A stretch of DNA of 64,000 nt. Source: Basidiobolus meristosporus CBS 931.73 (taxonomy: Eukaryota; Fungi; Basidiobolomycota). Made by a program: the position numbers and the translations under genes. The notes under the pieces were generated by a model. That model searched no databases, had not been told where the DNA came from, and saw only the letters and a list, made by a program, of their open reading frames with translations. The stretch spans positions 1-64,000 of the forward strand of contig MCFE01000056.1 in NCBI GenBank assembly GCA_002104905.1, written 5' to 3'. Positions 23,042 to 53,008 of the stretch are shown here, one piece after another. How positions within the stretch are numbered: the stretch's first letter is position 1; each line of letters begins with the position of its first letter.

Positions 23042-26000
23042 TTAAGCCCAGTCACAGATGATGGAGCCCTCGAAACTCTTGCATACAGTGCCAACTGCAC
23101 AGGTGTTTCTAAGTAGCTCGCCGTTCGCACAAACCGTGAAGAGTCTGGATTTACCAGAGTCAACACATTCGTAGGTGCCATTGATGCAGCTGGCTTCAGT
23201 GGGCTTGGGGGAGTGAGAGTGGGGAGTTACCGTCACTGTGGTAGTAATGGTGATAGTGTTGGGATTAGGGATGCAGGAGGGTGGTGCGATGGAGGTGGTA
23301 GGATGAGAGGTGGCGCTACCAGACTTGGATTCGTCAGTAGTGTGGGCAGTGATATGAGAATCCTTGTGAGCTTCAGTGGTTGCAGAGGCCTTGTGGGTTT
23401 CTTTGGGTACAGTTGCTTCGGAAGTCTCAGTGACCTTGTGAGACTCGGATGATTTGGTACCCGTTTGAACCACGGTAGACTTGGGGGACTCGTGAGTCTC
23501 AGAAGCCTTAGGAACGCTGATAGTCTCATGTTCCTCGTGAGATTTGACAGTCTCGGTAGTCTCAGTTGGCCTATGGGTCTCATGACTCTCGGTGGTTTCC
23601 ATCGATCTGTGGGCAACGGTGGTCTCAGTGGATTTGTTGGATTCCGAGACTGCCTTGGCCTTGCTGGAAACAGAAGTCTCAAAGGATCTGTGAGAGTCGG
23701 GAGTCTCGGTTGACTTATGGGCGGTGTGGTGTTCAGTATCCTTGTGAGACTCGGCAGTCTCAGTTGGCTTGTGAATGTTACCAGTCTCAACGGTCTTGGA
23801 GGTTTGGTGGGATTCAGAAGTCACGGTAGGTTGGTGAGATTCCACAGTGTCCATTGGTCTATGGGTGTTGCTGGTCTCTGAGGTCATGTGGGATTGGGTA
23901 GTCTCAGTGGCCTTGTGCGATGAAGTGATCGCATTTGACTTGTGACCGCTGCTGATCTCAGAGGCTTTGTGAGCCTCGGATGTAGGGACTGATCTGCGGG
24001 ACTCCAAAGTATCAGTTGATTTATGGGCATCACTAGTCTCCGAGGTCATATGAGACTCAGTGGCCTTGTGAGATCCAGAAACCACTGTTGGCTTATGAGA
24101 TTCTACGTTTGCGGTGGATTTGTGTGCTTTCGTAGAGTCGGTTGACTGGTGAACAGTCTTGGGCTCAGTATCCTTGTGAGATTCGGTTGCCTCTGTTGGT
24201 TTGACATGGCTGCTGCTCTCCAGGCTCTTGGAGGATTCAGCAGTCATGTTGGGCTTGTGAGACTCTGGTGCAACAGTTTGTTGATGGGGCTTGATGGTCT
24301 CAGTTGGCTCGAGAGTGTCGCTGGCCTTGACGGTGGTGGCCTTGGGAGATTCGGTGGAATGGTGCTTTCCTGTGGTCTGAGCAGTATGTTGTGATTCAGT
24401 TGCTTTAGTGGAGCCATGGGGTTTCGTAGTCACCACGGAGCTGGAGGAAGCGGAGCTATCAGTAGCTTTGCGAGACTCGGTTGCCTTGGATTTACCAGTA
24501 GAGCTATGAGAGCTAGATGTTCCGGAAACCAAGTGGGATTCGGTTGGTTTTGGTGTCTCATGGGGTGTGGTGTCACTGGGAGTGTTGTGAGCAGTAGAAC
24601 GTTCATCTGATTTGGAATGCTCATCTGAGGCTGATTGACTGGGAGTAGACTTGGATTCAATGATCTCAGACGTGCTAGCCGTAGACTTCAAAGCCTCACT
24701 AGAGCTATGCGAAATGGGTGTTTCAATAGCCTTGTGGGACTCGGTTGATTTGAGGGTCTTGTGGGATGCGGAGTTGTGAGTGGTGCTATGAACACTCGAA
24801 AGTTCACTTGACTCGGAATGCACACTTGGAATATTGGATTTGGGGGTCTCGCTTCCGGAATGAGATTCAGTATGTTGATGAGTGTAGGACGTGGCGCTCC
24901 CATTGCTCGATGGGGTTGCCTGGCTCGAGTTAACCTTACTGGACATGGAAGTCTCAAGGTGCTTATGACTGTCTGAATGAGATTCAGTGTGATGCTGACT
25001 CGCCGACTCGATGCTCTTGGCAGATGAGTGAAGTGCGTAACTTGAAGTAGCCTTGCTGGACACAGAGGTCTCGACATGCTTCTGGCTCTTTGATTCACTG
25101 CTCTTAATCGGTGTAGAGCTTTCATGACCAGTCTTCGACTCGGACTTTGCTGTCGCAATTGTGCTAGACTCGGATTTCGAAGTGTCACTAGAACTATGCG
25201 ACACGGTTGACACGGCTGACACGGTAGCCTTATGGGTCTCTGTTGCCTTTGTGCTCTCATTGGTTGTGGAGTCGTGAGTGGGGCTGTGTGTAGTCAAGCT
25301 ACTAGTAGCGTGGCTTGAGGATGGCTTGCTGGATTTCTCGATGGTACTATGTGACACGGATGTGATGGTTGCCTTGTGAGACTCAGTAGATTTGGTTGTC
25401 TCGTGGGATGCGGAGCTGTTCGCGACGCTGCGAGCACTCGAATGATCAGTTGATTCTGAATGAGCACTTGATGCAGTGGACTTGGGTGCTTCAGTACTAG
25501 AATGGCTTTCTGTTGGCTTGACTACCTTCTTGTGCTCGTTGTACCACTTACAGATCTCGGCTTGCTGTCCTTCTGCCTCCATCATGGCAAAGAATCCACA
25601 GTCGTTGCTTACAATACACTCCAAGTTGTCTTTGAGGAACTGACCATGGCCAGGATTGCTATCATCACAGAGACATGAGAACGAGTCAACAAAGTTGGGG
25701 CTGTGAATGTCCTGAGTGTACTTGGACCAGCACTTCTTGCCCGCCTTGAGCGAGCAGTCAGTAATGCACTTATTGGGAGGTGGGAAGGGGAAGTAGTTGG
25801 ATGGTCTGGGAATCCAGGTAGGCTGAGCATCAGTGGTTGTTGGGGCTTCTGAAGTCTCGGAGCTCACTGAGGAGTCACGCGCTGCAGAGGTGGTTGTGGT
25901 GCTGTGAGATACGGCGGCCTTGCTCTCTGAGTGAGACTCGGTGTGATGCTGACTCGCCGACTCGGTGCTCTTGGCAGATGAATGAGGTGCGTAACTTGAA

Positions 26001-27550
26001 GTAGCCTTGCTGGACACGGAGGTCTCAACATGCTTCTGGCTCTTCGATTCACTGCTCTTAATCGGTGTAGAGCTTTCATGACCAGTCTTCGACTCGGACT
26101 TTGCAGTCGCAACTGTGCTAGACTCGGATTTCGAAGTCTCACTAGAACTATGCGACACGGTTGGCACGGTTGACACGGTAGCCTTATGGGTCTCTGTTGC
26201 CTTTGTGTTCTCATTGGTTGTGGAGGAGTGAGTGGGGCTGTGAGTAGTCAAGCTACTAGTAGCGTGGCTTGCGGATGGCTTGCTGGATTCAGAAGTCTCA
26301 ACATGCTTCTGGCTCTCTGAATCACCACTCTTAACTGGTGCGGAGATTACTTGGCTAGACGCAGACTTGGACTTGAGGGTTTCAGTGGTGCTTGGTTCGG
26401 ACTTCGATTTCTCGGTGGTAGTATGTGACACGGATGCGTTGGTGGCCTTGTGAGACTCAGTGGATTTGGTTGTCTCGTGAGACGCGGAGCTGTTCGCGAC
26501 ACTGCGAGCACTCGAATGATCAGTTGATTCTGAATGAGCACTTGATGCAGTGGACTTGTGTGCTTCAGTACTAGAATGGCTTTCTGTTGGCTTGACTACC
26601 TTCTTGTGCTCGTTGTACCACTTGCAGATCTCGGCTTGCTGTCCTTCTGCCTCCATCATGGCAAAGAACCCACAGTCGTTGCTTACAATACACTCCAAAT
26701 TGTCTTTGAGGAACTGACCATGGCCAGGATTGCTATCATCACAGAGACATGAGAACGAGTCAACAAAGTTGGGGCTGTGGATGTCCTGAGTGTACTTGGA
26801 CCAGCACTTCTTGCCCGCCTTGAGCGAGCAGTCAGTAATGCACTTATTGGGAGGTGGGAAGGGGAAGTAGTTGGATGGTCTGGGAATCCAGGTAGGCTGA
26901 GCATCAGTGGTTGTTGGGGCCTCTGAAGTCTCATTGCCCCCCGAGGAGTGATGGGATGTCGGAGTGGTAGCACTTCTGTGGGGATCAGAGGTCTCACCCA
27001 CTGAGCGAGATTCCGAGTGATGAGGACTCTTTGGCTGGGAACTCTCAATGGATGAGAGGGTTGCATGACTGGAGGTAACATTGCTCGGCTCGGAGGCCAC
27101 TGAACTACTGTGTGTCGATGAATCGATCGATTTGGTACTAGCTGTAGGTTGAGAGATTCGACTTGTAGTGCTTCGTACAGACTTAATAGTTGAGGACAAC
27201 GTATGTGGTTTTACCGTGGGCCTGTGCTCTTGGTACCAATCACATACAGTGCTGTTATTGCTTTGGTAGTCGGACCAATCAATCCAATGCCAAAAGCAAT
27301 TGTTGGAATAACAGTTTGACACTTCATTGGTGTACTCGGTAGTTTTGTAGCTACTGCCGCATTGGCAGGACAAGGATTCGATAAAGTGCGGATTGCTTGG
27401 ATCAAGCGTGTAATCAGGCAGACACTTCTGACCGGCTTGCATAAAACACTGTTCAAGACAACTACCGAAGTTCATGTTGGGAGGGTTGGCGGATGCTGAA
27501 ACGACAGCAGCCATTGTAAGGCCAGTGACGGCCTTGGTAGTAATATGCAT
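23042..27550 (-). CDS. Array gene 1 (1502 aa): signal + three 8-Cys CFEM-like domains + S/T/H stalk + C-terminal CBM19-like module
   Basis: Single ORF; one N-terminal Cys domain, two internal repeat domains 1074 bp apart; ends CINGTYEC...FTVCANG...C..GTVCK....IICDWA. Confidence 0.88.
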   Translation of the reverse strand: MHITTKAVTGLTMAAVVSASANPPNMNFGSCLEQCFMQAGQKCLPDYTLDPSNPHFIESLSCQCGSSYKTTEYTNEVSNCYSNNCFWHWIDWSDYQSNNSTVCDWYQEHRPTVKPHTLSSTIKSVRSTTSRISQPTASTKSIDSSTHSSSVASEPSNVTSSHATLSSIESSQPKSPHHSESRSVGETSDPHRSATTPTSHHSSGGNETSEAPTTTDAQPTWIPRPSNYFPFPPPNKCITDCSLKAGKKCWSKYTQDIHSPNFVDSFSCLCDDSNPGHGQFLKDNLECIVSNDCGFFAMMEAEGQQAEICKWYNEHKKVVKPTESHSSTEAHKSTASSAHSESTDHSSARSVANSSASHETTKSTESHKATNASVSHTTTEKSKSEPSTTETLKSKSASSQVISAPVKSGDSESQKHVETSESSKPSASHATSSLTTHSPTHSSTTNENTKATETHKATVSTVPTVSHSSSETSKSESSTVATAKSESKTGHESSTPIKSSESKSQKHVETSVSSKATSSYAPHSSAKSTESASQHHTESHSESKAAVSHSTTTTSAARDSSVSSETSEAPTTTDAQPTWIPRPSNYFPFPPPNKCITDCSLKAGKKCWSKYTQDIHSPNFVDSFSCLCDDSNPGHGQFLKDNLECIVSNDCGFFAMMEAEGQQAEICKWYNEHKKVVKPTESHSSTEAPKSTASSAHSESTDHSSARSVANSSASHETTKSTESHKATITSVSHSTIEKSSKPSSSHATSSLTTHSPTHDSTTNESTKATETHKATVSAVSTVSHSSSDTSKSESSTIATAKSESKTGHESSTPIKSSESKSQKHVETSVSSKATSSYALHSSAKSIESASQHHTESHSDSHKHLETSMSSKVNSSQATPSSNGSATSYTHQHTESHSGSETPKSNIPSVHSESSELSSVHSTTHNSASHKTLKSTESHKAIETPISHSSSEALKSTASTSEIIESKSTPSQSASDEHSKSDERSTAHNTPSDTTPHETPKPTESHLVSGTSSSHSSTGKSKATESRKATDSSASSSSVVTTKPHGSTKATESQHTAQTTGKHHSTESPKATTVKASDTLEPTETIKPHQQTVAPESHKPNMTAESSKSLESSSHVKPTEATESHKDTEPKTVHQSTDSTKAHKSTANVESHKPTVVSGSHKATESHMTSETSDAHKSTDTLESRRSVPTSEAHKASEISSGHKSNAITSSHKATETTQSHMTSETSNTHRPMDTVESHQPTVTSESHQTSKTVETGNIHKPTETAESHKDTEHHTAHKSTETPDSHRSFETSVSSKAKAVSESNKSTETTVAHRSMETTESHETHRPTETTETVKSHEEHETISVPKASETHESPKSTVVQTGTKSSESHKVTETSEATVPKETHKASATTEAHKDSHITAHTTDESKSGSATSHPTTSIAPPSCIPNPNTITITTTVTVTPHSHSPKPTEASCINGTYECVDSGKSRLFTVCANGELLRNTCAVGTVCKSFEGSIICDWA

Positions 27551-28682: not shown

Positions 28683-31600
28683 TTAAGCCCAGTCGCAAAT
28701 GATGGAGCCTTGGAAGTTCATGCATACAGTACCAGCTGCGCAGGTATTTCTAATTTGCTTACCGTTCGCACAAACTGTGAAGACTGGGGAATATCCAGAA
28801 TCAACACATTCGTATGTGCCATTGATGCAACTGGCTTCAGTGGGCTTGGGGGATTGAGAATGGGAGGCGAGTGTCTCCACTGGAGTTACCGTCACTGTAG
28901 TGGTGATGGTGACAGTGTTGGGATTAGGGATGCAGGAGGGTGGTGCGATGGAGGTGGTAGGATGAGAGGTGGCGCTACCAGACTTGGATTCGTCAGTAGT
29001 GTGGGCAGTGATATGAGAATCCTTGTGAGCTTCAGTGGTTGCAGAGGCCTTGTGGGTTTCTTTGGGTACAGTTGCTTCGGAAGTCTCAGTGACCTTGTGA
29101 GACTCGGATGATTTGGTACCCGTTTGAACCACGGTAGACTTGGGGGACTCGTGAGTCTCAGTAGCCTTAGGAACGCTGATAGTCTCATGTTCCTCGTGAG
29201 ATTTGACAGTCTCGGTAGTCTCAGTTGGCCTATGGGTCTCATGACTCTCGGTGGTTTCCATCGATCTGTGGGCAACGGCGGTCTCAGTGGATTTGTTGGA
29301 TTCCGAGACTGCCTTGGCCTTGCTGGAAACAGAAGTCTCAAAGGATCTGTGAGAGTCGGGAGTCTCGGTTGACTTGTGGGCGGTGTGGTGTTCAGTATCC
29401 TTGTGAGACTCGGCAGTCTCAGTTGGCTTGTGAATGTTACCAGTCTCAACAGTCTTGGAGGTTTGGTGGGATTCAGAAGTCACGGTAGGTTGGTGAGTTT
29501 CCACAGTGTCCACTGGTCTATGGGTGTTGCTGGTCTCTGAGGTCATGTGGGATTGGGTAGTCTCAGTGGCCTTGTGCGATGAAGTGATCGCATTTGACTT
29601 GTGAGCGCTGCTGATCTCAGAGGCTTTGTGAGCCTCGGATGTAGGGACTGATCTGCGGGACTCCAAAGTATCAGTTGATTTATGGGCATCACTAGTCTCC
29701 GAGGTCATATGAGACTCAGTGGCCTTGTGAGATCCAGAAACCACTGTTGGCTTATGAGATTCTACGTTTGCGGTGGATTTGTGTGCTTTCGTAGAGTCGG
29801 TTGACTGGTGAACAGTCTTGGGCTCAGTATCCTTGTGAGACTCGGTTGCCTCTGTTGGTTTGACATGGCTGCTGCTCTCCAGGCTCTTGGAGGATTTAGC
29901 AGTCATGTTGGGCTTGTGAGACTCTGGTGCAACAGTTTGTTGATGGGACTTGATGGTCTCAGTTGGCTCGAGAGTGTCGCTGGCCTTGACGGTGGTGGCC
30001 TTGGGAGATTCGGTGGAATGGTGCTTTCCTGTGGTCTGAGCAGTATGTTGTGATTCAGTTGCTTTAGTGGAGCCATGGGGTTTCGTAGTCACCACGGAGC
30101 TGGAGGAGGCGGAGCTATCAGTAGGTTTATGGGCCTCAGTTGATTCTGATTTAATAGATGTTCGGGAAACCAAATGGGTTTCGGTTGATTTGGCTGTCTC
30201 ATGGGATGTGGAGACATGTGCGATGCTGTGAACAGTCGAGTGTTCAGCTGACTTGGAATGCTCGCCTGAGATGGATTGACTAGCAGTAGACTTAGATTCA
30301 ATGGTCTCAGTTGTGCTAACCGCAGGCCTCAAAGCCTCACTAGAGCTATGTGAAATGGGTGTTTCAATAGCCTTGTGGGACTCGGTTGATTTGAGAGACT
30401 CATGAGATGCGGAGTGTGTGGTGGCACTATGAATAGATGAACGTCCAGTGGGCACTGAATGCACATTTGGAACACTGGACTTGCGGTTCTCGTTTTCGGA
30501 ATGAGATTCAGTATGTTGCTGAGTATTAAACTTGGTGCTCTCGTTGCTTGATGTGGTTGCCTGACTCGAGATAACCTTACTGGTCATGGAGGTCACAACA
30601 TGCTTATGACTCTTTGATGCACTACTCTTCATGGTTCTGATGGTGGTTTGACTAGCAACAGACCTGGACTCTGTGGCCTTATGGGACTCGGTTACTTTGG
30701 TTGTCTCATGAGATGCAGAGTCGTGAGTGATATTGCCAACAGTCGAATGTTCAGTCGACTTTGGATGCACGCTTGAGGCACTAGACTTGGGATTTTCAGT
30801 ACTAGAATGGCTTTCGGTTGGCTTGACTACCTTCTTGTGCTCGTTGTACCACTTACAGATCTCGGCTTCCTGTCCTTCTGCCTCCATCATGGCAAAGAAT
30901 CCACAGTCGTTGCTAATAATACACTCCAAATTGTCTTTGAGGAACTGGTCATGGCCAGGATTGCTATCATCACAGAGACATGAGAACGAGTCAACAAAGT
31001 TGGGGCTGTGGATGTCCTGAGTGTACTTGGACCAGCACTTCTTGCCCGCCTTGAGTGAGCAGTCAGTAATGCACTTGTTGGGAGATGGGAAGGGGAAGTA
31101 GTTGGATGGTCTGGGAATCCAGGTAGGCTGAGCATCAGTGGTTGTTGGGGCTTCTGAAGTCTCAGAGCTCATTGAGGAGTCACGCGCTGCAGAGGTGGTT
31201 GTGGTGCTGTGAGATACGGCGGCCTTGCTCTCTGAGTGAGATTCGGTGTGATGCTGACTCGCCGACTCGGTGCTCTTGGCAGATGAATGAGGTGCGTAAC
31301 TTGAAGTAGCCTTGCTGGACACGGAGGTCTCAACATGTTTCTGGCTCTTCGATTCACTGCTCTTAATCGGTGTAGAGCTTTCATGACCAGTCTTCGACTC
31401 GGACTTTGCAGTCGCAACTGTGCTAGACTCGGATTTCGAAGTCTCACTAGAACTATGCGACACGGTTGGCACGGTTGACACGGTAGCCTTATGGGTCTCT
31501 GTTGCCTTTGTGTTCTCCTTGGTTGTGGAGTGGTGAGTGGAGCTGTGAGTAGTCAAGCTACTAGTAGCGTGGCTTGCGGATGGCTTGCTGGATTCAGAAG

Positions 31601-34600
31601 TCTCAACATGCTTCTGGCTCTCTGAATCACCACTCTTAACTGGTGTGGAGGTTACTTGGCTAGAGGCAGACTTGGACTTGAGGGTTTCAGTGGTGCTTGG
31701 TTCGGACTTCGATTTCTCGATGGTACTATGTGACACGGATGTGATGGTTGCCTTGTGAGACTCAGTGGATTTGGTTGTCTCGTGGGATACGGAGCTGTTC
31801 GCGACACTGCGAGCACTCGAATGATCAGTTGATTCTGAATGAGCACTTGATGCACTAGATTTGCGTGCTTCAGTACTAGAATGGCTTTCGGTTGGCTTGA
31901 CTACCTTCTTGTGCTCGTTGTACCACTTACAGATCTCGGCTTCCTGTCCTTCTGCCTCCATCATGGCAAAGAATCCACAGTCGTTGCTTACAATACACTC
32001 CAAATTGTCTTTGAGGAACTGGCCATGGCCAGGATTGCTATCATCACAGAGACATGAGAACGAGTCAACAAAGTTGGGGCTGTGAATGTCCTGAGTGTAC
32101 TTGGACCAGCACTTCTTGCCCGCCTTGAGCGAGCAGTCAGTAATGCACTTGTTGGGAGATGGGAAGGGGAAGTAGTTGGATGGTCTGGGAATCCAGGTAG
32201 GCTGAGCATCAGTGGTTGTTGGGGCTTCTGAAGTCTCGGAGCTCACTGAGGAGCCATGCGCTACAGAGGTGGTTGTGGTGCTGTGAGATACGGCGGCCTT
32301 GCTCTCTGAGTGAGATTCGGTGTGATGCTGACTCGCCGACTCGGTGCTCTTGGCAGATGAATGAGGTGCGTAACTTGAAGTAGCCTTGCTGGACACGGAA
32401 GTCTCAACATGTTTCTGGCTCTTTGATTCACTGCTCTTAATCGGTGTAGAGCTTTCATGACCAGTCTTCGACTCGGACTTTGCAGTCGCAACTGTGCTAG
32501 ACTCGGATTTCGAAGTCTCACTAGAACTACGAGACACGGTTGACACGGCTGACACGGCTGACACGGTAGCCTTATGGGTCTCTGTTGCCTTTGTGTTCTC
32601 CTTGGTTGTGGAGTGGTGAGTGGAGCTGTGAGTAGTCAAGCTACTAGTAGCGTGGCTTGCGGATGGCTTGCTGGATTCAGAAGACTCAACATGCTTCTGG
32701 CTCTCTGAATCACCACTCTTAACTGGTGCGGAGGTTACTTGGCTAGACGCAGACTTGGACTTGAGGGTCTCAGTGGTGCTTGGTTCGGACTTCGATTTCT
32801 CGATGGTACCATGTGACACGGATGTGTTGGTGGCCTTGTGAGACTCAGTGGATTTGGTTGTCTCGTGGGATACGGAGCTGTTCGCGACGCTGCGAGCACT
32901 CGAATGATCAGTTGATTCTGAATGAGCACTTGATGCAGTGGACTTGTGTGCTTCAGTACTAGAATGGCTTTCGGTTGGCTTGACTACCTTCTTGTGCTCG
33001 TTGTACCACTTACAGATCTCGGCTTCCTGTCCTTCTGCCTCCATCATGGCAAAGAATCCACAGTCGTTGCTTACAATACACTCCAAATTGTCTTTGAGGA
33101 ACTGACCATGGCCAGGATTGCTATCATCACAGAGACATGAGAACGAGTCAACAAAGTTGGGGCTGTGGATGTCCTGAGTGTACTTGGACCAGCACTTCTT
33201 GCCCGCCTTGAGTGAGCAGTCAGTAATGCACTTGTTGGGAGATGGGAAGGGGAAGTAGTTGGATGGTCTGGGAATCCAGGTAGGCTGAGCATCAGTGGTT
33301 GTTGGGGCTTCTGAAGTCTCGGAGCTCACTGAGGAGCCATGCGTTGCAGAGGTGGTTGTGGTGCTGTGAGATACGGCGGCCTTGCTCTCTGAGCGAGATT
33401 CGGTGTGATGCTGACTCGCCGACTCAGTGCTCTCGGTAGATGAATGAGGTGTATAACTTGAAGTAGCCTTGCTGGACACGGAGGTCTCAACATGCTTCTG
33501 GCTCTTCGATTCACTGCTCTTAATCGGTGTAGAGCTTTCATGACCAGTCTTCGACTCGGACTTTGCAGTCGCAACTGTGCTAGACTCGGATTTGGAAGTC
33601 TTACTAGAGCTATGCGACACGGTTGACACGGTAGCCTTATGGGTCTCTGTTGCCTTTGTGTTCTCATTGGTTGTGGAGTGGTGAGTGGAGCTGTGAGTAG
33701 TCAAGCTACTAGTAGCGTGGCTTGCGGATGGCTTGCTGGATTCAGAAGTCTCAACATGCTTCTGGCTCTCTGAATCACCACTCTTAACTGGTGCGGAGGT
33801 TACTTGGCTAGACGCAGACTTGGACTTGAGGGTCTCAGTGGTGCTTGGTTCGGACTTCGATTTCTCGATGGTACTATGTGACACAGATGTGTTGGTAGCC
33901 TTGTGAGACTCAGTGGATTTGGTTGTCTCGTGGGATGCGGAGCTGTTCGCGACGCTGCGGGCACTCGAATGATCAGTTGATTCTGAATGAGCACTTGATG
34001 CAGTGGACTTGTGTGCTTCAGTACTAGAATGGCTTTCGGTTGGCTTGACTACCTTCTTGTGCTCGTTGTACCACTTACAGATCTCGGCTTCCTGTCCTTC
34101 TGCCTCCATCATGGCAAAGAACCCACAGTCGTTGCTTACAATACACTCCAAATTGTCTTTGAGGAACTGACCATGGCCAGGATTGCTATCATCACAGAGA
34201 CATGAGAACGAGTCAACAAAGTTGGGGCTGTGGATGTCCTGAGTGTACTTGGACCAGCACTTCTTGCCCGCCTTGAGCGAGCAGTCAGTAATGCACTTGT
34301 TGGGAGATGGGAAGGGGAAGTAGTTGGATGGTCTGGGAATCCAGGTAGGCTGAGCATCAGTGGTTGTTGGGGCTTCTGAAGTCTCGGAGCTCACTGAGGA
34401 GCCATGCGCTGCAGAGGTGGTTGTGGTGCTGTGAGATACGGCGGCCTTGCTCTCTGAGTGAGATTCGGTGTGATGCTGACTCGCCGACTCGGTGCTCTTG
34501 GCAGATGAATGAGGTGCGTAACTTGAAGTAGCCTTGCTGGACACGGAGGTCTCAACATGCTTCTGGCTCTTTGATTCACTGCTCTTAATCGGTGTAGAGC

Positions 34601-36404
34601 TTTCATGACCAGTCTTCGACTCGGACTTTGCAGTCGCAATTGTGCCAGACTCGGATTTCGAAGTCTCACTAGAACTATGAGACACGGTTGGCACGGTTGA
34701 CACGGTAGCCTTATGGGTCTCTGTTGCCTTTGTGCTCGCATTGGTTGTGGAGTCGTGAGTGGGGCTGTGAGTAGTCAAGCTACTAGTAGCGTGGCTTGCG
34801 GATGGCTTGCTGGATTCAGAAGACTCAACATGCTTCTGGCTCTCTGAATCACCACTCTTAACTGGTGTGGAGGTTACTTGGCTAGAGGCAGACTTGGACT
34901 TGAGGGTTTCAGTGGTGCTTGGTTCGGACTTCGATTTCTCGGTGGTGCTATGTGACACGGATGTGATGGTTGCCTTGTGAGACTCAGTGGATTTGGTTGT
35001 CTCGTGGGATACGGAGCTGTTCGCGACGCTGCGGGCACTCGAATGATCAGTTGATTCTGAATGAGCACTTGATGCAGTGGACTTGTGTGCTTCAGTACTA
35101 GAATGGCTTTCTGTTGGCTTGACTACCTTCTTGTGCTCGTTGTACCACTTACAGATCTCGGCTTGCTGTCCTTCTGCCTTCATCATGGCAAAGAATCCAC
35201 AGTCGTTGCTAATAATACACTCCAAGTTGTCTTTGAGGAACTGGCCATGGCCAGGATTGCTATCATCACAGAGACATGAGAACGAGTCAACAAAGTTGGG
35301 GCTGTGGATGTCCTGAGTGTACTTCGACCAGCACTTCTTGCCCGCCTTGAGCGAGCAGTCAGTTATGCACTTGTTGGGAGATGGGAAGGGGAAGTAGTTG
35401 GATGGTCTGGGAATCCAGGTAGGCTGAGCATCAGTGGTTGTTGGGGCTTCTGAAGTCTGGGAGCTCACTGAGGAGCCATGCGCTGCAGAGGTGGTTGTGG
35501 TGCTGTGAGATACGGGGGCCTTGCTCTCTGAGCGAGATTCGGTGTGATGCTCACTCGCCGACTCGATGCTCTTGGTAGATGAATGAGGTGCGTAACTCAT
35601 GGTGACCTTGCTGGACACGGAACTCTCAACATGCTTCTGGCTCTTTGAGTCGCTGCTCTTAATAGGCTTAGAAGACATTTGGCTACCCATAGACTTGGGT
35701 TTTAAAGTCTTACTAGAGCTATCTGATATAGTAATGTGGTGAGTTTGTGTTGATTTGGTTGTCTCGTTAGCTGTGGAGTCATGTGCATCACTGTGTTTAG
35801 TTGGGTTTTCAGTTGCAGGAATCGAAGTAGTCGTACTGATAGATTCGGCTTTTGAAGCTTCTATAGAACTTTGTGCTCTTTGTGATGAAGTACCATCTTC
35901 GGACTTCACACTTTTAACCGTACTAGTAGAGTCGATTGATGGCTCGGAGGCTGCTGAACTACTATGTATCGATGAATCGATCGATTTGGTACTAGCTGTA
36001 GGCTGAGAGATCCGACTTGTAGTGCTTCGTACAGACTTAATAGTTGAGGACAACGTATGTGGTTTTACCGTGGGCTTGTGCTCTTGGTACCAATCACATA
36101 CAGTGCTGTTATTGCTTTGGTAGTCAGACCAATCAATCCAATGCCAATAGCAATTGTTGGAATAACAGTTTGACACTTCATTGGTGTACTCGGTAGTTTT
36201 GTAGCTACTGCCGCATTGGCAGGACAAGGATTCGATAAAGTGCGGATTGCTTGGATCAAGCGTGTAATCAGGCAGACACTTCTGACCGGCTTGCATAAAA
36301 CACTGTTCAAGACAACTGCCGAAGTTCATGTTGGGAGGGTTGGCGGATGCTGAAACGACAGCAGCCATTGTAAGGCCAGTGACGGCCTTGGTAGTAATAT
36401 GCAT
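28683..36404 (-). CDS. Array gene 2 (~2573 aa from ATG 36404): signal + six 8-Cys CFEM-like domains + stalk + CBM19-like module
   Basis: Starts MHITTKA like gene 1; five internal TWIPRPSNYFPF-Cys-domain units; ends IICDWA. Confidence 0.88.
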   Translation of the reverse strand: MHITTKAVTGLTMAAVVSASANPPNMNFGSCLEQCFMQAGQKCLPDYTLDPSNPHFIESLSCQCGSSYKTTEYTNEVSNCYSNNCYWHWIDWSDYQSNNSTVCDWYQEHKPTVKPHTLSSTIKSVRSTTSRISQPTASTKSIDSSIHSSSAASEPSIDSTSTVKSVKSEDGTSSQRAQSSIEASKAESISTTTSIPATENPTKHSDAHDSTANETTKSTQTHHITISDSSSKTLKPKSMGSQMSSKPIKSSDSKSQKHVESSVSSKVTMSYAPHSSTKSIESASEHHTESRSESKAPVSHSTTTTSAAHGSSVSSQTSEAPTTTDAQPTWIPRPSNYFPFPSPNKCITDCSLKAGKKCWSKYTQDIHSPNFVDSFSCLCDDSNPGHGQFLKDNLECIISNDCGFFAMMKAEGQQAEICKWYNEHKKVVKPTESHSSTEAHKSTASSAHSESTDHSSARSVANSSVSHETTKSTESHKATITSVSHSTTEKSKSEPSTTETLKSKSASSQVTSTPVKSGDSESQKHVESSESSKPSASHATSSLTTHSPTHDSTTNASTKATETHKATVSTVPTVSHSSSETSKSESGTIATAKSESKTGHESSTPIKSSESKSQKHVETSVSSKATSSYAPHSSAKSTESASQHHTESHSESKAAVSHSTTTTSAAHGSSVSSETSEAPTTTDAQPTWIPRPSNYFPFPSPNKCITDCSLKAGKKCWSKYTQDIHSPNFVDSFSCLCDDSNPGHGQFLKDNLECIVSNDCGFFAMMEAEGQEAEICKWYNEHKKVVKPTESHSSTEAHKSTASSAHSESTDHSSARSVANSSASHETTKSTESHKATNTSVSHSTIEKSKSEPSTTETLKSKSASSQVTSAPVKSGDSESQKHVETSESSKPSASHATSSLTTHSSTHHSTTNENTKATETHKATVSTVSHSSSKTSKSESSTVATAKSESKTGHESSTPIKSSESKSQKHVETSVSSKATSSYTPHSSTESTESASQHHTESRSESKAAVSHSTTTTSATHGSSVSSETSEAPTTTDAQPTWIPRPSNYFPFPSPNKCITDCSLKAGKKCWSKYTQDIHSPNFVDSFSCLCDDSNPGHGQFLKDNLECIVSNDCGFFAMMEAEGQEAEICKWYNEHKKVVKPTESHSSTEAHKSTASSAHSESTDHSSARSVANSSVSHETTKSTESHKATNTSVSHGTIEKSKSEPSTTETLKSKSASSQVTSAPVKSGDSESQKHVESSESSKPSASHATSSLTTHSSTHHSTTKENTKATETHKATVSAVSAVSTVSRSSSETSKSESSTVATAKSESKTGHESSTPIKSSESKSQKHVETSVSSKATSSYAPHSSAKSTESASQHHTESHSESKAAVSHSTTTTSVAHGSSVSSETSEAPTTTDAQPTWIPRPSNYFPFPSPNKCITDCSLKAGKKCWSKYTQDIHSPNFVDSFSCLCDDSNPGHGQFLKDNLECIVSNDCGFFAMMEAEGQEAEICKWYNEHKKVVKPTESHSSTEARKSSASSAHSESTDHSSARSVANSSVSHETTKSTESHKATITSVSHSTIEKSKSEPSTTETLKSKSASSQVTSTPVKSGDSESQKHVETSESSKPSASHATSSLTTHSSTHHSTTKENTKATETHKATVSTVPTVSHSSSETSKSESSTVATAKSESKTGHESSTPIKSSESKSQKHVETSVSSKATSSYAPHSSAKSTESASQHHTESHSESKAAVSHSTTTTSAARDSSMSSETSEAPTTTDAQPTWIPRPSNYFPFPSPNKCITDCSLKAGKKCWSKYTQDIHSPNFVDSFSCLCDDSNPGHDQFLKDNLECIISNDCGFFAMMEAEGQEAEICKWYNEHKKVVKPTESHSSTENPKSSASSVHPKSTEHSTVGNITHDSASHETTKVTESHKATESRSVASQTTIRTMKSSASKSHKHVVTSMTSKVISSQATTSSNESTKFNTQQHTESHSENENRKSSVPNVHSVPTGRSSIHSATTHSASHESLKSTESHKAIETPISHSSSEALRPAVSTTETIESKSTASQSISGEHSKSAEHSTVHSIAHVSTSHETAKSTETHLVSRTSIKSESTEAHKPTDSSASSSSVVTTKPHGSTKATESQHTAQTTGKHHSTESPKATTVKASDTLEPTETIKSHQQTVAPESHKPNMTAKSSKSLESSSHVKPTEATESHKDTEPKTVHQSTDSTKAHKSTANVESHKPTVVSGSHKATESHMTSETSDAHKSTDTLESRRSVPTSEAHKASEISSAHKSNAITSSHKATETTQSHMTSETSNTHRPVDTVETHQPTVTSESHQTSKTVETGNIHKPTETAESHKDTEHHTAHKSTETPDSHRSFETSVSSKAKAVSESNKSTETAVAHRSMETTESHETHRPTETTETVKSHEEHETISVPKATETHESPKSTVVQTGTKSSESHKVTETSEATVPKETHKASATTEAHKDSHITAHTTDESKSGSATSHPTTSIAPPSCIPNPNTVTITTTVTVTPVETLASHSQSPKPTEASCINGTYECVDSGYSPVFTVCANGKQIRNTCAAGTVCMNFQGSIICDWA
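30730..35640 (-). repeat. Intragenic tandem array of ~1.07 kb units (five Cys-domain copies); ends approximate
   Basis: Marker gggaatccaggtagg at 31113, 32187, 33270, 34335 and 35409 (spacings 1074, 1083, 1065, 1074). Confidence 0.9.
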
Positions 36405-38379: not shown

Positions 38380-39903
38380 TTAAGCCCAGTCACAGATGAT
38401 GGAGCCTTGGAAGGGCTTGCACACGGTACCTGGGGCACAGGCTTGGGTGAAAACTCTACCGTTGGCGCAGACAGTGAATTTGTCGGATTTACCACCGTCA
38501 ACGCACTTGTAGGTGCCGTTAACACAGGAGCCTTCAGTTGGCTTGGGGTGGGATCCAGCAGCAACGGTGACGGTCTTGGTCTTGGTCACAGTGACTGGAA
38601 CACATGGCTTAGTGGGCTTGGGAGTCTCAACAGGCTTGTGGGTCTCAGTAACTTTGTGAGTCTCGGTAGTTTTGTGGGTTTCAACAGGCTTGTGAGTCTC
38701 GGTAGTCTTGTGAGTCTCAGTGTCCTTGTGGGTTTCGGTGGTCTTGTGAGTCTCAGTGTCCTTGTGGGTTTCGGTGGTCTTGTGAGTCTCAGTGTCCTTG
38801 TGGGTTTCGGTGGTCTTGTGAGCCTCGGTATCCTTGTGGGTTTCGGTGGTCTTGTGAGCCTCAGTATCCTTGTGGGTTTCGGTGGCCTTGTGAGTCTCGG
38901 AAGCCTTGTCAGTGGCGGTGGTCTTGACAGTTTCAGTAGCCTTGGTAGTAGATTCAGACTTGACGCTTTCGGTGGATTTATGGCTCTCGGTCTTCTCGGT
39001 AGAGGTGGTCTCCTTGGACTCGGTGGTCTTATGAGATTCAGTAGTCTTGGGGGTCTCAGTAGATTTATGAGATTCAGTGGACTTGTGAGTCTCGGTGGAC
39101 TTCTCAGTCTCAGTGGACTTGTGGGTCTCGGTGGACTTCTCGGTCTCAGTAGATTTGGGAGACTCGGTAGACTTCTCAGTCTCAGTGGACTTGTGGGTCT
39201 CGGTGGACTTCTCGGTCTCGGTAGACTTGTGAGACTCGGTGGACTTCTCGGTCTCGGTAGACTTGTGAGACTCGGTGGACTTCTCGGTCTCGGTAGACTT
39301 GTGAGACTCGGTGGACTTCTCGGTCTCGGTAGACTTGTGGGTCTCAGTGGACTTCTCGGTCTCAGTAGACTTGGGAGACTCGGTGGACTTCTCAGTCTCA
39401 GTGGACTTGTGGGTCTCGGTGGTCTCGGTGGACTTCTCAGTCTCGGTAGACTTGTGGGTCTCAGTGGACTTCTCGGTCTCGGTAGACTTGTGGGTCTCAG
39501 TAGACTTCTCGGTCTCAGTAGGCTTATGGGTCTCGGTAGACTTCTCGGTCTCAGTGGACTGGTGGGTCTCGGTAACACTAGGTTGGGGTACCCAGGAGCT
39601 ATAGACACTGCAGGTCATAGGAGCGAGTGCCTTGTAAGAAGCAACAGCGTTAGCATTACACTTAGAGTCAATGAAGCATTGGTCTCTGTCGTTAATGAAA
39701 GTCTTCTGGGCTGGATTGCTGTCATCGCAAAGGCAGCCTAGAGATTCATTATAGTTGGCACTGTTTTGATCCATAGTGTATTTAGGAGTGCACTTGAGGC
39801 CAGCCTTCTCTACACACTTGTTGATACAGATATCAGGGTTTTCCCAAGCAGTGGCAACAGTTGCGGCAGCAAGGCCGGCAAGAACTTTGAGAGAGAAATG
39901 CAT
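38380..39903 (-). CDS. Array gene 3 (507 aa): signal + 8-Cys domain + TETEKS/TETHKS hexamer stalk + CBM19-like module
   Basis: Single ORF with the same terminal modules; 18-bp repeat stalk. Confidence 0.9.
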   Translation of the reverse strand: MHFSLKVLAGLAAATVATAWENPDICINKCVEKAGLKCTPKYTMDQNSANYNESLGCLCDDSNPAQKTFINDRDQCFIDSKCNANAVASYKALAPMTCSVYSSWVPQPSVTETHQSTETEKSTETHKPTETEKSTETHKSTETEKSTETHKSTETEKSTETTETHKSTETEKSTESPKSTETEKSTETHKSTETEKSTESHKSTETEKSTESHKSTETEKSTESHKSTETEKSTETHKSTETEKSTESPKSTETEKSTETHKSTETEKSTETHKSTESHKSTETPKTTESHKTTESKETTSTEKTESHKSTESVKSESTTKATETVKTTATDKASETHKATETHKDTEAHKTTETHKDTEAHKTTETHKDTETHKTTETHKDTETHKTTETHKDTETHKTTETHKPVETHKTTETHKVTETHKPVETPKPTKPCVPVTVTKTKTVTVAAGSHPKPTEGSCVNGTYKCVDGGKSDKFTVCANGRVFTQACAPGTVCKPFQGSIICDWA

Positions 39904-43724: not shown

Positions 43725-46700
43725 TGTTGTAAGAGTCTTGGAGATATTGGAAGTGATTTGGAGAACAAGTAGATTATGTGGTTTTCACTTAATGATTTAT
43801 TGAATGTAAAAGTAGTATTTATACTTTTACATGGTCTTGGCATTACAAACACGTAGAATAGGTTAAGGAAGGTCCCAAGAACATGTGTGCAAGGTTTGGG
43901 GCTGTTTGGACAACTTTGAGAATTTTCATGTTCTGGGTACCTGGTATTTTGGTGAAAATATTCTAAGTAAATCCCGACAAGGAATTTGGTCAGTATTCTC
44001 TAGGATTTGAAGGTGATGATCTAAGTGACTAAGTTAGGTGAATATTTAGGTGGAAAATACGAATTTTTACAACACTCCCACTCAGCTAAATGTTCATACT
44101 GACTAGTCCTAATTTTGACCTAAGATATTCAAACTTGTCTCTAGCTAATGGTTTGGTAAATATGTCTGCAATCATTTCATCTGTAGGACAGTAAACTAAG
44201 CTAACTAAGTTATTCTCTATAGCTTCACGTATGAAATGATGTCTAATATCTATGTGCTTGGTTCTAGCATGAAAAGTTGGATTTCTACCTAATTGTATAC
44301 ATCCTTGATTATCTTGAAATAAAGTAATAGGCGTTTTTTGACATAGGCCTAAATCTGTAAAGAGCTTTCTTAACCACATTGCTTCTTTTGTAGCTTCACA
44401 GGCTGCCATATACTCTGCCTCTGTAGTAGAAAGTGCTACGGTTGGTTACTTTCTTGAATTCCATGAAATGGCTCCTTTACAGTAAAGAAAGGTGTATCCT
44501 GTGGTGGATCTTCTGTCTTCTAAATTTCGTCCCCAATCAGCATCAGAGTATCCCACAAGATCCTGTTCTGAATCCTTATAAGTGTATCTTAAGCAGATAT
44601 CAGCAGTTCCTTTTAGGTATCTAAAAATCCGCTTAACTGCTGCAATATGATCAGATCCATAATTCTGATTATGTTGGCTGACAACTCCCACTGAATATGA
44701 GATATCTGGACGTGTTCCAAGCATGATATACATCAGACTGCCGACCATAGATTGATAAGGAAAGTCAGGGCTTTCAGATGGCACCAAGCTCTCTTGATTT
44801 GGTTGAGTTTTGACCAAGTTAAGGTTTGTCTCCATTGGGGTAGCTGCCGGTTTACAGTCTTCCATTTGGTACTTCTTTAGTATATCTTGAATATACTTGG
44901 ATTGGCTTAGGGTAATAGTCTGGGTACTTCTGTCTATGGAGAACTTAATCCCTAAGTAGTAACTAAGTTCTCCTAGATTGGACATCTTGAACTCCTTAGA
45001 TAGGCTGGATTTAGTCTCTTCCAATGTTTCTAGGTTATTGGCGGCTATAATAAGATCATCCACATATAGAGCTAATAGAACTGGATTTGCTCTATCTGGC
45101 TTATAGTATATACTATAGTCAGCATTACTCCTTTTGAAACTCAAAGATTCCAAATAAGAATCTATCTTGCAATTCCAGGCTCTCGGTGATTGTTTGAGAC
45201 CATATAGTGACTTTTTAAGCTTGCAGACCAAATGGGGGTTATCTTGGTCAACAAACCCATCAGGCTGGTCCATATACACGTCCTCATCAAGTTCTCCATT
45301 CAAAAATGCAGTTTTTACATCCATTTGATGAATAAAAAACTTATATTTGGCTGCAATAGCCAATATTAATCTGATGGAATTAAACTTGGCTACCGGTGCA
45401 AAGGTCTCAGTATAGTCAAGTCCTTTTGTTTGAGAGTATCCTTTGGCTACAAGTCTTGCTTTGTATCTTTCAATTGTACCATCAGCCTTGTATTTTGTCT
45501 TGAAGACCCATCTGCATCCAATTGATTTTCGGTTGATTGGTAATTTGACTAAGTCCCAAGTTTGATTTTCCATCAGTGCCTGATATTCCTCAGTCATTGC
45601 AGATCTCCAAAACTTTGTCTGAGGGCTATTTAGGGCCTCTTTTACAGTCTGGGGTTCATCAATATGGACTGAATAGGCATAGGCTAAGTTTGTACCCTCA
45701 TTGATATAGTAATTTGGGCTATTTCTTGTCCGATTGGATCTCCGGGCATTTGATACTGGAATGATCACTTCTGGGATATTCCTGGGCACTGATTCTGGCT
45801 GAACCACGGTTGCAGAGTCCTCTGGAGTGAAAAAATTTTCATTGTTTTGCTCTGATTCAATCCTGACAATTGGTGGACTTGAGATTAAATTTTCGTCATC
45901 ATCTGATGTCATTTTTTGTGAAAATTTTGAATTTTCATCAAACAACACATCCCTGGACTTGATAAGCTTCTTTGCTTTGGTATTGTAGAGTCTGTATGCC
46001 TTACTCTCATTGCAGTAGCCCAAAAATATGCATTTTACACTTTTTGGCTCAAATTTTGACTGATTTCCGGCCAGTTTTTTGGCATATGCTGTGCACCCAA
46101 ATATTCTTAGATGTTCTGCACTTGGTCTGTATCCATACCATGCTTCAAATGGAGTAGAATCACGAAGTATTCTGTTATAACTCCTATTTTTAAGGTATAC
46201 AGCAGTGGCAACTGATTCCGCCCAAAAATCATAGGATAATTTTTGATCATGGATCATAGATCTTGCCATATCAATTATTGATCTGTTAGCTCGTTCTGCT
46301 ACTCCATTTTGCTGTGGGGAGTATGGTACAGTAGTCTCTTGCTTTATCCCATGAATTTTGCAGAAGTGGATGAAGAGTTTTGAGGTATATTCTCCACCAT
46401 TGTCAGAGCGTATTTTCTTGATTTTTTCACCAGTTTCTCTCTCCACCATGGCTTTAAACTCCCTGAGCTTAGACAGAGCTTCTTCCTTTCTCTCCATGAA
46501 GTAGACCCATGTGTATCTTGTATAATCATCAATAAAAGTGATTAAATACTTCATCCCGCCTAAGGATAAATTTTGCATAGGTCCACACAGATCTGAGTGA
46601 ATTAGATCTAATTTTTTCTTAGTTTTGATTAACCCAGAGCTCTTGAACGGTTGTCTGGCTTGTTTCCCATATATGCAGGCTTCACAGTGCTCCAAATTAG

Positions 46701-48385
46701 CTGGGGGATCAGTCTTTACTCTGGAAATTAGCTGATCTTTGATCATTTTGCGCAAATAATCAAAATTGATGTGTCCAAATCTCCTGTGCCAAAGCATTGG
46801 TGTTTCTTCATTTAAGTTACTTATATTGGCTTCCGGATATGATGGAATATAAGTCAACTTGTATAGGTTCTGATCTCTGATGCCCAAAGCAATATGAGCA
46901 CCATTTTGATCAGTGATCCTGCATCCAGAATTGTCAAAACTGAAACTGAGTCCTTCTGCTGTGGCCTTGCTTACAGAGAGTAGGTTCTTAGCTATTTCTG
47001 GTACATAGAGTACTTCTTTAAAGGTCAGTGTATGGCTTCCTTCACTGCTTCTAAGGTTTACTTGGATAGTTCCTTCTCCCACTGCATCAAGTGTTCTATC
47101 GTCACCCATGAAAACCTTCTTAATTGGAATTTCTTGATATTGGGTAAAAAGTTCTTTTTGGTGTGTAAAGTGTTGAGAAGCTCCAGAGTCAATATACCAC
47201 GTCTGAGAATCCTTGTTAGTGGTCATATTTAGTGCAGATATGAATAGTCTATCTTCAGTTGTTGCAGCATTTCCATATTCAGGCTTCTTTTGCTGATAAT
47301 CTCTCTTTTTGAAACACCGGTCTGATGTGTGTCCTTTCCTTTTGCAGTAGTTGCAAAATAGGTTGCTGTTGCCTTTGTAGGGTCTTGGGTACCTCCTTTG
47401 TTGGCTATCATTGCTTATTAAAGCATTTTCTTCTTCCTTCTTATTGGCGCTTGATTTTCTTAATTCTTCATCCAGGAGCCTTCCATATACGTAATTTAAG
47501 GTCAAATCTTCAGTTCTGGACTCTAGGGCTGATACAAGGCCCTGAAACTTGTCTGTCAGGCTATTCAGGATGGTAACTATCACATCCTCATCAGTAGTTG
47601 GTACGCCCACAGATTCCATCTCATCTACCAGCAGGGTAATTCTGTTAATTAGATTTTTCATTTCTTCTCCTGGCAGCATCTTTGTAGTAAAGAATTTTCT
47701 TCTCAGATACATTTTCTTGGCAGCTGAACATGACTGGTAGGTGTCTTCTAATGCCTTCCAGGCATTCTTTGCCGTTTTTGCTCTTGAGCATTGAATTAGC
47801 AATTTGTCCTTGACATTAAGGCAAATGCAGTTAAAGGCACTTTGTTCTTTCTTCTGGTACTTTAAGGCTTCCTCTCCCACGTTTTTAGGAGGGCATTCTT
47901 CTCCCATGACAATATCCCAAAGGCCTCTTTCTTGCAGCAGCATCTTCATCTTCACCTTCCACACTTAGTAGTTAGATCCATCCAACTTTTCAGCAGAGGG
48001 AAAAATTCCAGTAATAGCAGTAGTAGACATTGCAGAGAGTGACAGCTTGGTGCTCATAACCTGTTGTAAGAGTCTTGGAGATATTGGAAGTGATTTGGAG
48101 AACAAGTAGATTATGTGGTTTTCACTTAATGATTTATTGAATGTAAAAGTAGTATTTATAGTTTTACATGGTCTTGGCATTACAAACACGTAGAATAGGT
48201 TAAGGAAGGTCCCAAGAACATGTGTGCAAGGTTTGGGGCTGTTTGGACAACTTTGAGAATTTTCATGTTCTGGGTACCTGGTATTTTGGTGAAAATATTC
48301 TAAGTAAATCCCGACAAGGAATTTGGTCAGTATTCTCTAGGATTTGAAGGTGATGATCTAAGTGACTAAGTTAGGTGAATATTTA
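43725..48385 (-). mobile_element. Near-full-length Ty1/copia LTR retrotransposon
   Basis: 3' LTR 43725-44074 (TGTTGTAA...TTACAACA) and 5' LTR 48062-~48385 (near-identical, distal end damaged). PBS GGTTATGAGC follows the 5' LTR; PPT GAGTGGGAG precedes the 3' LTR. Confidence 0.93.
44086..48057 (-). pseudogene. Copia gag-pol (gag, Zn knuckle, protease, integrase, RT, RNase H) with two in-frame TAA stops
   Basis: CNYCKRKGHTSDRC, WYIDSGASQH, LWHRRFGH, IRSDNGGEY, ARLVAKGYSQ, LYVDDLI, GYSDADWG, KHIDIRHHFIRE. One frame of 1324 codons, interrupted only by TAA at 47965-47967 and 44446-44448. Confidence 0.92.
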
Positions 48386-51820: not shown

Positions 51821-53008
51821 TTAGGCCCAGTCACAGATGATGGAACCTTCGAAGGTCTTGCAAACAGTGCCAGGGGCGCAGACTTGCTCAATGGCCTTAC
51901 CGTTAGCGCAAACAGTGAACTTGGCGGATTTACCAGATTCAACGCATTGGTAGGTACCATTGGAGCAAGAGGCTTCAGTGGGCTTGGCAGAGTGGCCAAC
52001 AGTTACGGTCTTGGTGACAGTGAGGGTAACTGGTGCGCAAGTTTCAGCAGGCTTGTGAGCCTCAGTAGTCTTGTGGGCTTCAGTAGTGTGGTGGGTCTCG
52101 GTAGGCTTGTGAGTCTCGGTGGTCTTCTCGGTCTCGGTAGACTTGTGAGTCTCGGTGGACTTCTCGGTCTCGGTAGACTTGTGAGTCTCGGTGGACTTCT
52201 CGGTCTCAGTGGACTTGTGGGTCTCGGTGGACTTCTCGGTCTCAGTGGACTTGTGGGTCTCGGTGGACTTCTCGGTCTCAGTGGACTTGGGAGTCTCGGT
52301 GGACTTCTCGGTCTCAGTAGACTTGTGGGTCTCGGTGGACTTCTCGGTCTCAGTAGACTTGTGGGTCTCGGTGGACTTCTCAGTCTCAGTAGACTTGTGG
52401 GTCTCGGTGGACTTCTCGGTCTCAGTAGACTTGTGGGTCTCGGTGGACTTCTCGGTCTCAGTAGACTTGTGGGTCTCGGTAGACTTCTCGGTCTCAGTAG
52501 ACTTGGGAGTCTCGGTGGACTTCTCGGTCTCAGTAGACTTGTGGGTCTCGGTGGACTTCTCGGTCTCAGTAGACTTGTGGGTCTCGGTGGACTTCTCGGT
52601 CTCAGTAGACTTGTGGGTCTCGGTGGACTTCTCGGTCTCGGTGGACTTGTGGGTCTCGGTGGACTTCTCGGTCTCAGTGGGTTTGACGCTGTTTTCTTTA
52701 TACCAGGCGCAAATCTGACCTTGCAAAGTCATCAACTCGGTGACATGTGACAATGTGTAGGGACAGTTCATTGCGCACAAAGCAGTGTTATCGGTGAATT
52801 TGCTTTTCAAGGGACTTTCACAGATTAGTTCGATGGATTTCATAAAGTTAGGACTGCTTGGATCCTGGGTGTAATCCGGCATCAGTTTCTTGCCAGCGTT
52901 CAAGGCGCAGTCAGTAATACATTGAGTAGGGTATTTGAATGGGAAGTCGACAGCAGAGACAACAACTGAGGCGGCAAGAACCGCAAGGGTCTTAGAGGCA
53001 AAATGCAT
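51821..53008 (-). CDS. Array gene 4 (395 aa): signal + 6-Cys domain + ~32 TETxKS hexamers + CBM19-like module
   Basis: Single ORF ending IICDWA. Confidence 0.9.
   Translation of the reverse strand: MHFASKTLAVLAASVVVSAVDFPFKYPTQCITDCALNAGKKLMPDYTQDPSSPNFMKSIELICESPLKSKFTDNTALCAMNCPYTLSHVTELMTLQGQICAWYKENSVKPTETEKSTETHKSTETEKSTETHKSTETEKSTETHKSTETEKSTETHKSTETEKSTETPKSTETEKSTETHKSTETEKSTETHKSTETEKSTETHKSTETEKSTETHKSTETEKSTETHKSTETEKSTETPKSTETEKSTETHKSTETEKSTETHKSTETEKSTETHKSTETEKSTETHKSTETEKTTETHKPTETHHTTEAHKTTEAHKPAETCAPVTLTVTKTVTVGHSAKPTEASCSNGTYQCVESGKSAKFTVCANGKAIEQVCAPGTVCKTFEGSIICDWA

Follow-up and report, generated by a model that had tools for sequence, protein, structure and literature searches.

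Does the small cysteine-rich domain encoded repeatedly in a 64,000-nucleotide stretch of Basidiobolus meristosporus CBS 931.73 (contig MCFE01000056.1, positions 1 to 64,000; hereafter the window) belong with CFEM, a domain of fungal extracellular proteins, and how did three of the six genes that carry it come to lack two particular cysteines? The CFEM domain is, to our knowledge and as reviews describe it, confined to higher fungi. The explanation that we find best overall, and consider probable, is that a zygomycete-specific remote relative of CFEM provides the heads of six tandem secreted wall proteins. The feature itself is real and coherent: a CFEM-type family with a long loop, which occurs outside Dikarya and presents disulfide losses as a natural series. 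An initial annotation of the window had proposed such a relative; its interpretation is partly supported, and neither an unrelated fold nor a different cysteine pairing nor a dikaryan host was found, with three corrections: a single loss of the two cysteines is probable, there is a dikaryan precedent for it and the link to CFEM is remote.

Translation of the 64-kb window gave six complete intronless open reading frames (ORFs) in tandem on the minus strand, between positions 23042 and 57867. All six share one layout: a hydrophobic signal-like N-terminus, directly followed by a 73-amino-acid (aa) cysteine domain (the head), a stalk, and a six-cysteine module (the tail) at the C-terminus, ending ...SIICDWA. 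The 73-aa domain occurs in 13 copies across the six genes, which are as follows.

23042..27550, minus strand: gene A, 1502 aa; N-terminal head at 27242-27460, internal heads at 26624-26842 and 25550-25768
28683..36404, minus strand: gene B, 2573 aa (from the ATG at 36404); predicted signal peptide, six 8-Cys heads, Ser/Thr/His-rich stalk, CBM19-like tail
36096-36314, minus strand: N-terminal 8-Cys head of gene B
35151-35369, 34077-34295, 33012-33230, 31929-32147 and 30855-31073, minus strand: five internal 8-Cys heads of gene B
35151..35369, minus strand: first internal head of gene B, with all of C1 to C8; the loop reads YTQD-IHSPNF; AlphaFold2 (AF2) model with pLDDT 89.8, all-helical
38380..39903, minus strand: gene C, 507 aa; 8-Cys head at 39610-39828 (YTMD), TETHKSTETEKS stalk, CBM19-like tail
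51821..53008, minus strand: gene D, 395 aa; 6-Cys head at 52709-52921 with C3 replaced by L and C4 by L, YTQDPSSPNF kept; stalk; tail
55074..55679, minus strand: gene E, 201 aa; 6-Cys head at 55380-55592 with C3 replaced by I, C4 by L and Asp by V; short stalk; tail
57262..57867, minus strand: gene F, 201 aa; 6-Cys head at 57568-57780 with C3 replaced by T, C4 by M and Asp by G; short stalk; tail
28695-28829 (B), 23054-23188 (A), 38392-38526 (C), 51833-51967 (D), 55086-55220 (E) and 57274-57408 (F), minus strand: CBM19-like six-Cys tails

Cysteines in the head follow the pattern C-x3-C-x7-C-x18-C-x-C-x16-C-x5-C-x15-C exactly; in the domain at 35151-35369 the C3-C4 loop contains YTQD. Genes A-C have eight cysteines per domain; genes D-F have six, and the two that are absent are exactly C3 (L, I and T, respectively) and C4 (L, L and M). 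The Asp of the C3-C4 loop is kept in A-D. The initial annotation had described the spacing and the eight-cysteine pattern of A-C, the absence of exactly C3 and C4 from D-F and the additional absence of Asp from E and F, and the minus-strand translation bears it out on each count.

Gene A is, by its sequence, a recent duplicate of gene B. The extra copies of the cysteine domain in these two genes (two in A and five in B) all lie within a repeat unit of 1074 nucleotides (nt), which occurs five times in gene B. Its copies share 96-97% nucleotide identity, so that the seven internal domains of A and B are treated as a single observation and the window holds six independent domain types. As side observations on the pair, the N-terminal heads (27242-27460 in A and 36096-36314 in B) are near-identical, a C-terminal stalk segment (23223-23522 and 28882-29181) is 98% identical and the number of repeats differs (2 in A, 5 in B). 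A public protein of CBS 931.73 (ORX87938.1), 98% identical to the repeat, corresponds to part of an A/B-like gene; since it is only a partial fragment, the repeat copy number of A and B is provisional.

How far the family extends was read from a search of 1.84 billion representatives with an eight-domain profile, at a threshold of E<=1e-3. It found 75 cluster representatives, with E-values of 1e-30 to 1e-75 for the relatives, and homology among the six domain types is far beyond chance. Organism labels were available for 30 of the 75, and all 30 are from Basidiobolus, Mucorales (Radiomyces, Apophysomyces, Phascolomyces and Mucor flavus) or Mortierellomycotina (Linnemannia, Mortierella, Actinomortierella and Lunasporangiospora); additional members are metagenome sequences. 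The closest proteins come from Basidiobolus ranarum and from B. meristosporus CBS 931.73 itself. A word-based homologue search returned Basidiobolus proteins only, with gene E as with the relative P0003, and none with the head of gene C. The suggestion in the initial annotation that the domain might lie outside Dikarya agrees with the host, since the genus Basidiobolus belongs to Basidiobolomycota (NCBI taxonomy). No CFEM was recorded in Basidiobolomycota, Mucorales or Mortierellomycotina by Zhang 2015 (PMC4530338), and our literature search found no paper placing CFEM in zygomycetes. Multi-head proteins occur in several lineages of the family. Separately, P0006, P0009 and P0010 (Mortierellomycotina) and P0005 (B. 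ranarum) were seen to carry four to six heads each, of the 4-Cys or 6-Cys type.

The cysteine states of the wider family were scored on 91 complete domains aligned to the family profile. All eight cysteines are present in 12 domains, every one of them from Basidiobolus; 48 lack C3 and C4, and 31 lack C3, C4, C5 and C8. The six-cysteine state is the majority in the wider family and the eight-cysteine state a minority. C1, C2, C6 and C7 are found in all 91 domains, and half-pairs in none (0/91): C3 and C4 are either both present or both absent, and so are C5 and C8. In domains without them, the C3 position is usually taken by L, F, I or M and the C4 position by Y, L or F. Because cysteines are absent only as pairs, bonds C3-C4 and C5-C8 are predicted, and C1 and C2 would pair with C6 and C7. 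The domain would then be a small helical module held by the nested disulfides C1-C7, C2-C6, C3-C4 and C5-C8. This putative pairing is that of CFEM, the same four bonds having been modelled in MaCFEM85 (PMC9967070). The initial annotation had predicted the C3-C4 bond from the paired loss; the rule of both or neither in 91 of 91 domains and the agreement with MaCFEM85 favour it, and the physical bond stays a prediction. In the mechanism that we propose, the C3-C4 bond would act as a staple closing the 18-residue loop, and a dispensable one: in D-F and most of the family, both staple cysteines would have given way to hydrophobic residues and the remaining domain would have been kept.

How many times, and in which direction, this change occurred was approached with an unrooted tree in which the four variable cysteine columns had been masked beforehand. 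D, E and F together with P0002, a B. ranarum counterpart of gene F, form one clade (Shimodaira-Hasegawa-like approximate likelihood ratio test, SH-aLRT, 88), and a second one holds the 4-Cys domains (86); within the former, E, F and P0002 group with a clade support of 100 on a branch of length 2.1. Separate losses in each of D, E and F were rejected on the strength of their grouping in a single clade. A tree placing all 79 C3/C4-less domains on the same side of a single branch was not rejected by the approximately unbiased (AU) test and had the higher likelihood (p-AU 0.82). Because this test does not reject a single change, one to about four C3/C4 events are allowed. For D-F the count is probably one, not three, and a single loss could account for D-F or indeed for the entire family. 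Of the paired loss in 'three paralogues' described by the initial annotation, the pattern holds; three separate events probably do not, D-F being one clade with perhaps one loss.

The same tree leaves room for the opposite direction, namely that six cysteines are ancestral in zygomycetes, that Basidiobolus acquired the C3-C4 staple in a single event and that D-F never lost it. The Basidiobolus origin of all 12 eight-cysteine domains and the likelihood of the single-branch tree speak for such a gain, and, since the tree is unrooted, it does not tell gain from loss. We nevertheless regard a gain as unlikely. C3 and C4 stand at CFEM positions (C3 is 7 residues after C2, versus 8-12 in the consensus, and C4 forms a C-x-C with C5), and if the two families are homologous, eight cysteines are the simpler ancestral state. 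In addition, the tail of D is 73-75% identical to the tails of A-C, to which it is closest, pointing to whole-gene tandem duplication inside the array. Among the six genes the tails are 62-81% identical, versus 20-50% for the heads. Because of this tail identity, with D nearest to A-C, whole-gene duplication within the array followed by loss on the D-F branch is favoured. Exchange of tails between genes may be an alternative, and is kept as one because P0014, a member of the large 6-Cys clade, carries the same CBM19-like tail.

We consider it quite probable, from sequence comparison and modelling, that the cysteine domain is a remote homologue of CFEM without being a member of PF05730. A Pfam scan of 67 members found CFEM in four (best E 5.9e-5; next family 0.013), and it was the only Pfam family with E<1e-2. 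Domain 2 of P0008 from B. ranarum, which is 58% identical to the domain at 35151-35369, matched CFEM profile positions 9-66 of 66 with 22.1 bits (cut-off, 22), and is the only relative to reach the PF05730 gathering cut-off. Four relatives (P0007, P0017, P0019 and P0083) carry the automatic UniRef name 'CFEM domain-containing'. Compared with the CFEM consensus PxC[A/G]x2Cx8-12Cx1-3[x/T]Dx2-5CxCx9-14Cx3-4Cx15-16C (Kulkarni 2003, as quoted in PMC13586796), the domain agrees in cysteine order and in three spacings (x3, x1 and x15), and an Asp lies in the C3-C4 loop in A-D. The AF2 model of the 35151-35369 domain (pTM 0.79) has an extra short helix within the C3-C4 loop. When this domain was compared with the ESM Atlas, the nearest structural cluster was a Mucoromycota family member (template modelling score, TM, 0.79); the second, 100% PF05730, followed at TM 0.63 (76 residues, root-mean-square deviation 2.3 A), with a drop to 0.46 thereafter, and CFEM was the sole Pfam-named neighbour above TM 0.5. 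Csa2 (4Y7S) ranked 6th of 48,161 chains for the AF2 model. The protein context also fits fungal secreted or wall proteins, as judged from hydrophobic N-termini, Ser/Thr-rich stalks and the GPI-like (glycosylphosphatidylinositol-like) tails of relatives. The initial annotation had called the domain a CFEM relative with an expanded loop: the putative pairing, the Atlas cluster and the P0008 match agree with this, the window's own domains falling below the Pfam CFEM cut-off. An unrelated fold, which would have told against it, was not found, the nearest Pfam-named structural neighbour being the CFEM cluster.

Several results weigh on the other side. The repeated domain of A and B and the heads of C-F gave no Pfam CFEM match at E<=10, and the N-terminal head of A/B scored 13.5 bits (E 0.074), below the 22-bit cut-off. 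Four of the seven spacings are outside the consensus (C2-C3 7, C3-C4 18, C5-C6 16 and C6-C7 5). Foldseek comparison of the model with the Protein Data Bank (PDB) gave no match; single domains and profiles A1, A2 and A4 searched against PDB chain sequences gave chance matches only, and never Csa2; and for the model of the six-cysteine head of gene F (pLDDT 79) Csa2 was not in the top 50. No labelled dikaryan CFEM is among the 30 labelled relatives of the profile search. The co-absence of cysteines across the 91 domains may rest on one event per pair (AU test), and it is from sequence that the pairing is drawn. Finally, a published precedent for paired C3/C4 loss exists in Dikarya: two CFEMs of Marssonina brunnea lack C3 and C4 (a further one lacks C1 and C7; PMC9684206). 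An ESM Atlas feature search gave no usable match for the 35151-35369 domain and, for the N-terminal head of A/B, CAP22 as the sole match, its 0.77 falling short of the level taken as meaningful.

Could a zygomycete-specific helical cysteine module simply have converged on CFEM? Stapled domains with C-x3-C and C-x-C could recur, and the convergence would then be of pattern only; we think this improbable. Convergence would have to account for CFEM being the only Pfam family at E<1e-2, for one member that reaches the curated cut-off over almost the full profile, for the coincidence of cysteine order, putative pairing, loop Asp and a secreted Ser/Thr-rich GPI-anchored architecture, and for CFEM being the only Pfam-named Atlas neighbour above TM 0.5. 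Two other cysteine-rich families were rejected as candidates: the eight-cysteine motif of plant non-specific lipid transfer proteins and the hydrophobins both depend on a CC pair that this domain lacks, and the fold lists contain neither.

If remote homology to CFEM is accepted, the conserved loop bears on a possible ligand. A family-wide and nearly invariant motif, [Y/W/F]-[T/S]-x-D-P-x-S-P-x-F-x-x-S-L, contains the Asp, which is kept in 84 of the 91 domains (12/12 with eight cysteines, 41/48 with six and 31/31 with four); the CFEM consensus likewise has an Asp between C3 and C4 (PMC13586796). It is also common for family members to have an aromatic [Y/F]-P-[F/Y] upstream of C1, which recalls, by analogy, Tyr36, the residue of the Csa2 N-terminal handle that stacks on haem (PMC13586796). 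By the same analogy, it is possible, as a tentative proposal, that Asp-bearing heads hold ferric haem on the wall as Csa2, Rbt5 and Pga7 do. We give nearly an even chance to the alternative that the domain is of CFEM type and no haem carrier, the Asp and P-x-S-P-x-F being structural and the heads serving wall integrity, adhesion or another ligand. Many CFEM proteins act in wall integrity or as effectors (reviews; PMC13586796), the loop is twice the CFEM length with an extra short helix, and haem binding by the heads is an argument from analogy. A purely structural role sits less well with the retention of Asp in nearly the whole family, including all 31 four-cysteine forms with two staples lost, and with the conserved aromatic where Csa2 has its haem-stacking Tyr.

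The Asp-less domains include E, F and P0002, in which most of the loop motif has gone too, and binding of a ligand by the loop has probably been lost or changed in these three. P0002 is 78% identical to gene F over the head, and E/F-type genes are therefore maintained and not decaying. A changed function of E, F and P0002 is plausible as the simplest reading. The functional divergence of E and F suggested by the initial annotation is credible in this light, given the Asp kept in 84 of the 91 domains and the long E/F branch, with function itself predicted from sequence. A bolder idea, which we treat as a long shot, is that gene B would be a single-chain haem relay, its six Asp-bearing heads, set about 285 residues apart on a His-rich glycosylated stalk and fixed to wall chitin, passing ferric haem inward by analogy with Candida, which splits the task among Csa2, Rbt5 and Pga7; E and F, short and without the Asp, would have a different use. 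If a relay of this kind existed, CFEM-type haem capture would be older than the split between zygomycetes and Dikarya.

As proposed, each protein would begin with a signal peptide and carry one to six heads, a stalk rich in Ser, Thr and His (46 to about 2050 residues long) and, at its end, a CBM19-like tail; the stalk is probably O-glycosylated and the tail would anchor the heads to chitin. The stalks of A-D contain 38-47% S+T and 8-9% His (38% and 8% in gene B); those of E and F have just 46 residues, without His. The Pfam CBM_19 family (PF03427) was matched above its cut-off of 20.1 bits by the tails of E (22.2) and F (25.6) and below it by those of C (18.3) and D (14.9), with E-values over the window's tails of 1e-5 to 3e-2. 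A full-length Pfam scan gave no CBM_19 match for the tails of A and B, though they are 62-81% identical to the other four. GPI-type C-termini (a short polar stretch, then a hydrophobic tail) are found in the Mucorales, the Mortierellomycotina and several Basidiobolus relatives, and in the window's six genes the CBM19-like module occupies the position of that signal.

The stalks of C (38611-39574) and D (52094-52678) consist of 36-nt tandem repeats encoding TETHKSTETEKS, with 16 copies at 96% matches in gene D. His at every six residues in these stalks could bind metal or haem. Their sub-threshold Pfam match to a Plasmodium histidine-rich protein (37.9 bits versus 45.8) probably reflects composition only. 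Long Gly/Leu/Ser-rich ORFs run antisense to the stalk repeats (38317-39741, plus strand, 474 aa; 51884-52750, plus strand, 288 aa), and are most likely by-products of the codon periodicity of the repeats and not genes.

Genes C and D are separated by mobile elements, which lie outside the cysteine-domain family.

44449..47964, minus strand: copia-type retrotransposon ORF, an intact polyprotein with gag, integrase and RVT_2
49068-50279, minus strand: broken second copia-type copy

Elsewhere in the window, where base composition is about 36-51% G+C (2-kb windows), a piggyBac-like transposase ORF lies at 12472-13953 on the minus strand (DDE_Tnp_1_7, E 3.5e-41). A small ORF at 4765-5016, also on the minus strand (84 aa from MRSF...), encodes several cysteines and an N-terminus resembling a signal sequence; it gave no match in Pfam.

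If the family is of CFEM type, its occurrence in Basidiobolus, Mucorales and Mortierellomycotina would push the origin of CFEM back, and it raises the question of wall-bound haem carriers in Mucorales, some of which cause iron-dependent infections. The natural series of eight, six and four cysteines is a ready experiment on the staples that the fold needs, and a chitin-binding tail in place of a GPI signal would be another route to fix heads on a chitin-rich wall. Novelty is tempered by the automatic CFEM names given to a few members in UniRef and by the paired C3/C4 loss published for dikaryan CFEMs (PMC9684206).

Among known systems, the nearest is CFEM itself (PF05730, IPR008427; Csa2, 4Y7S), which is likewise fungal, extracellular and placed directly after the signal peptide. 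The order of the eight cysteines is common to both, as are C-x3-C, C-x-C and C7-x15-C8, a matching putative pairing, an Asp in the C3-C4 loop and an all-helical fold, after which come a Ser/Thr-rich region and a wall anchor. They differ in the C3-C4 loop, which has 18 residues and its own conserved motif in the window's family versus 4-9 residues in CFEM, in three other spacings that are off by 1-2 residues and in that most members of the family have six or four cysteines. The GPI-anchored type II CFEM proteins Rbt5 and Pga7 of C. albicans have the same succession of head, stalk and wall anchor, and the zygomycete relatives end in GPI-type signals as they do; the window's six proteins end instead in a CBM19-like module, and gene B strings six heads on one chain. 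With CBM19 (PF03427) the likeness lies in the six-cysteine modules of E and F, which pass the curated cut-off, whereas those of C and D fall below it and those of A and B have no match; chitin binding is putative. The closest parallel to D-F is offered by MbCFEM4 and MbCFEM11 of Marssonina brunnea (PMC9684206), in which exactly the third and fourth cysteines are absent. These two are ordinary short-loop CFEMs of an ascomycete, and their loss of C3 and C4 is for that reason independent.

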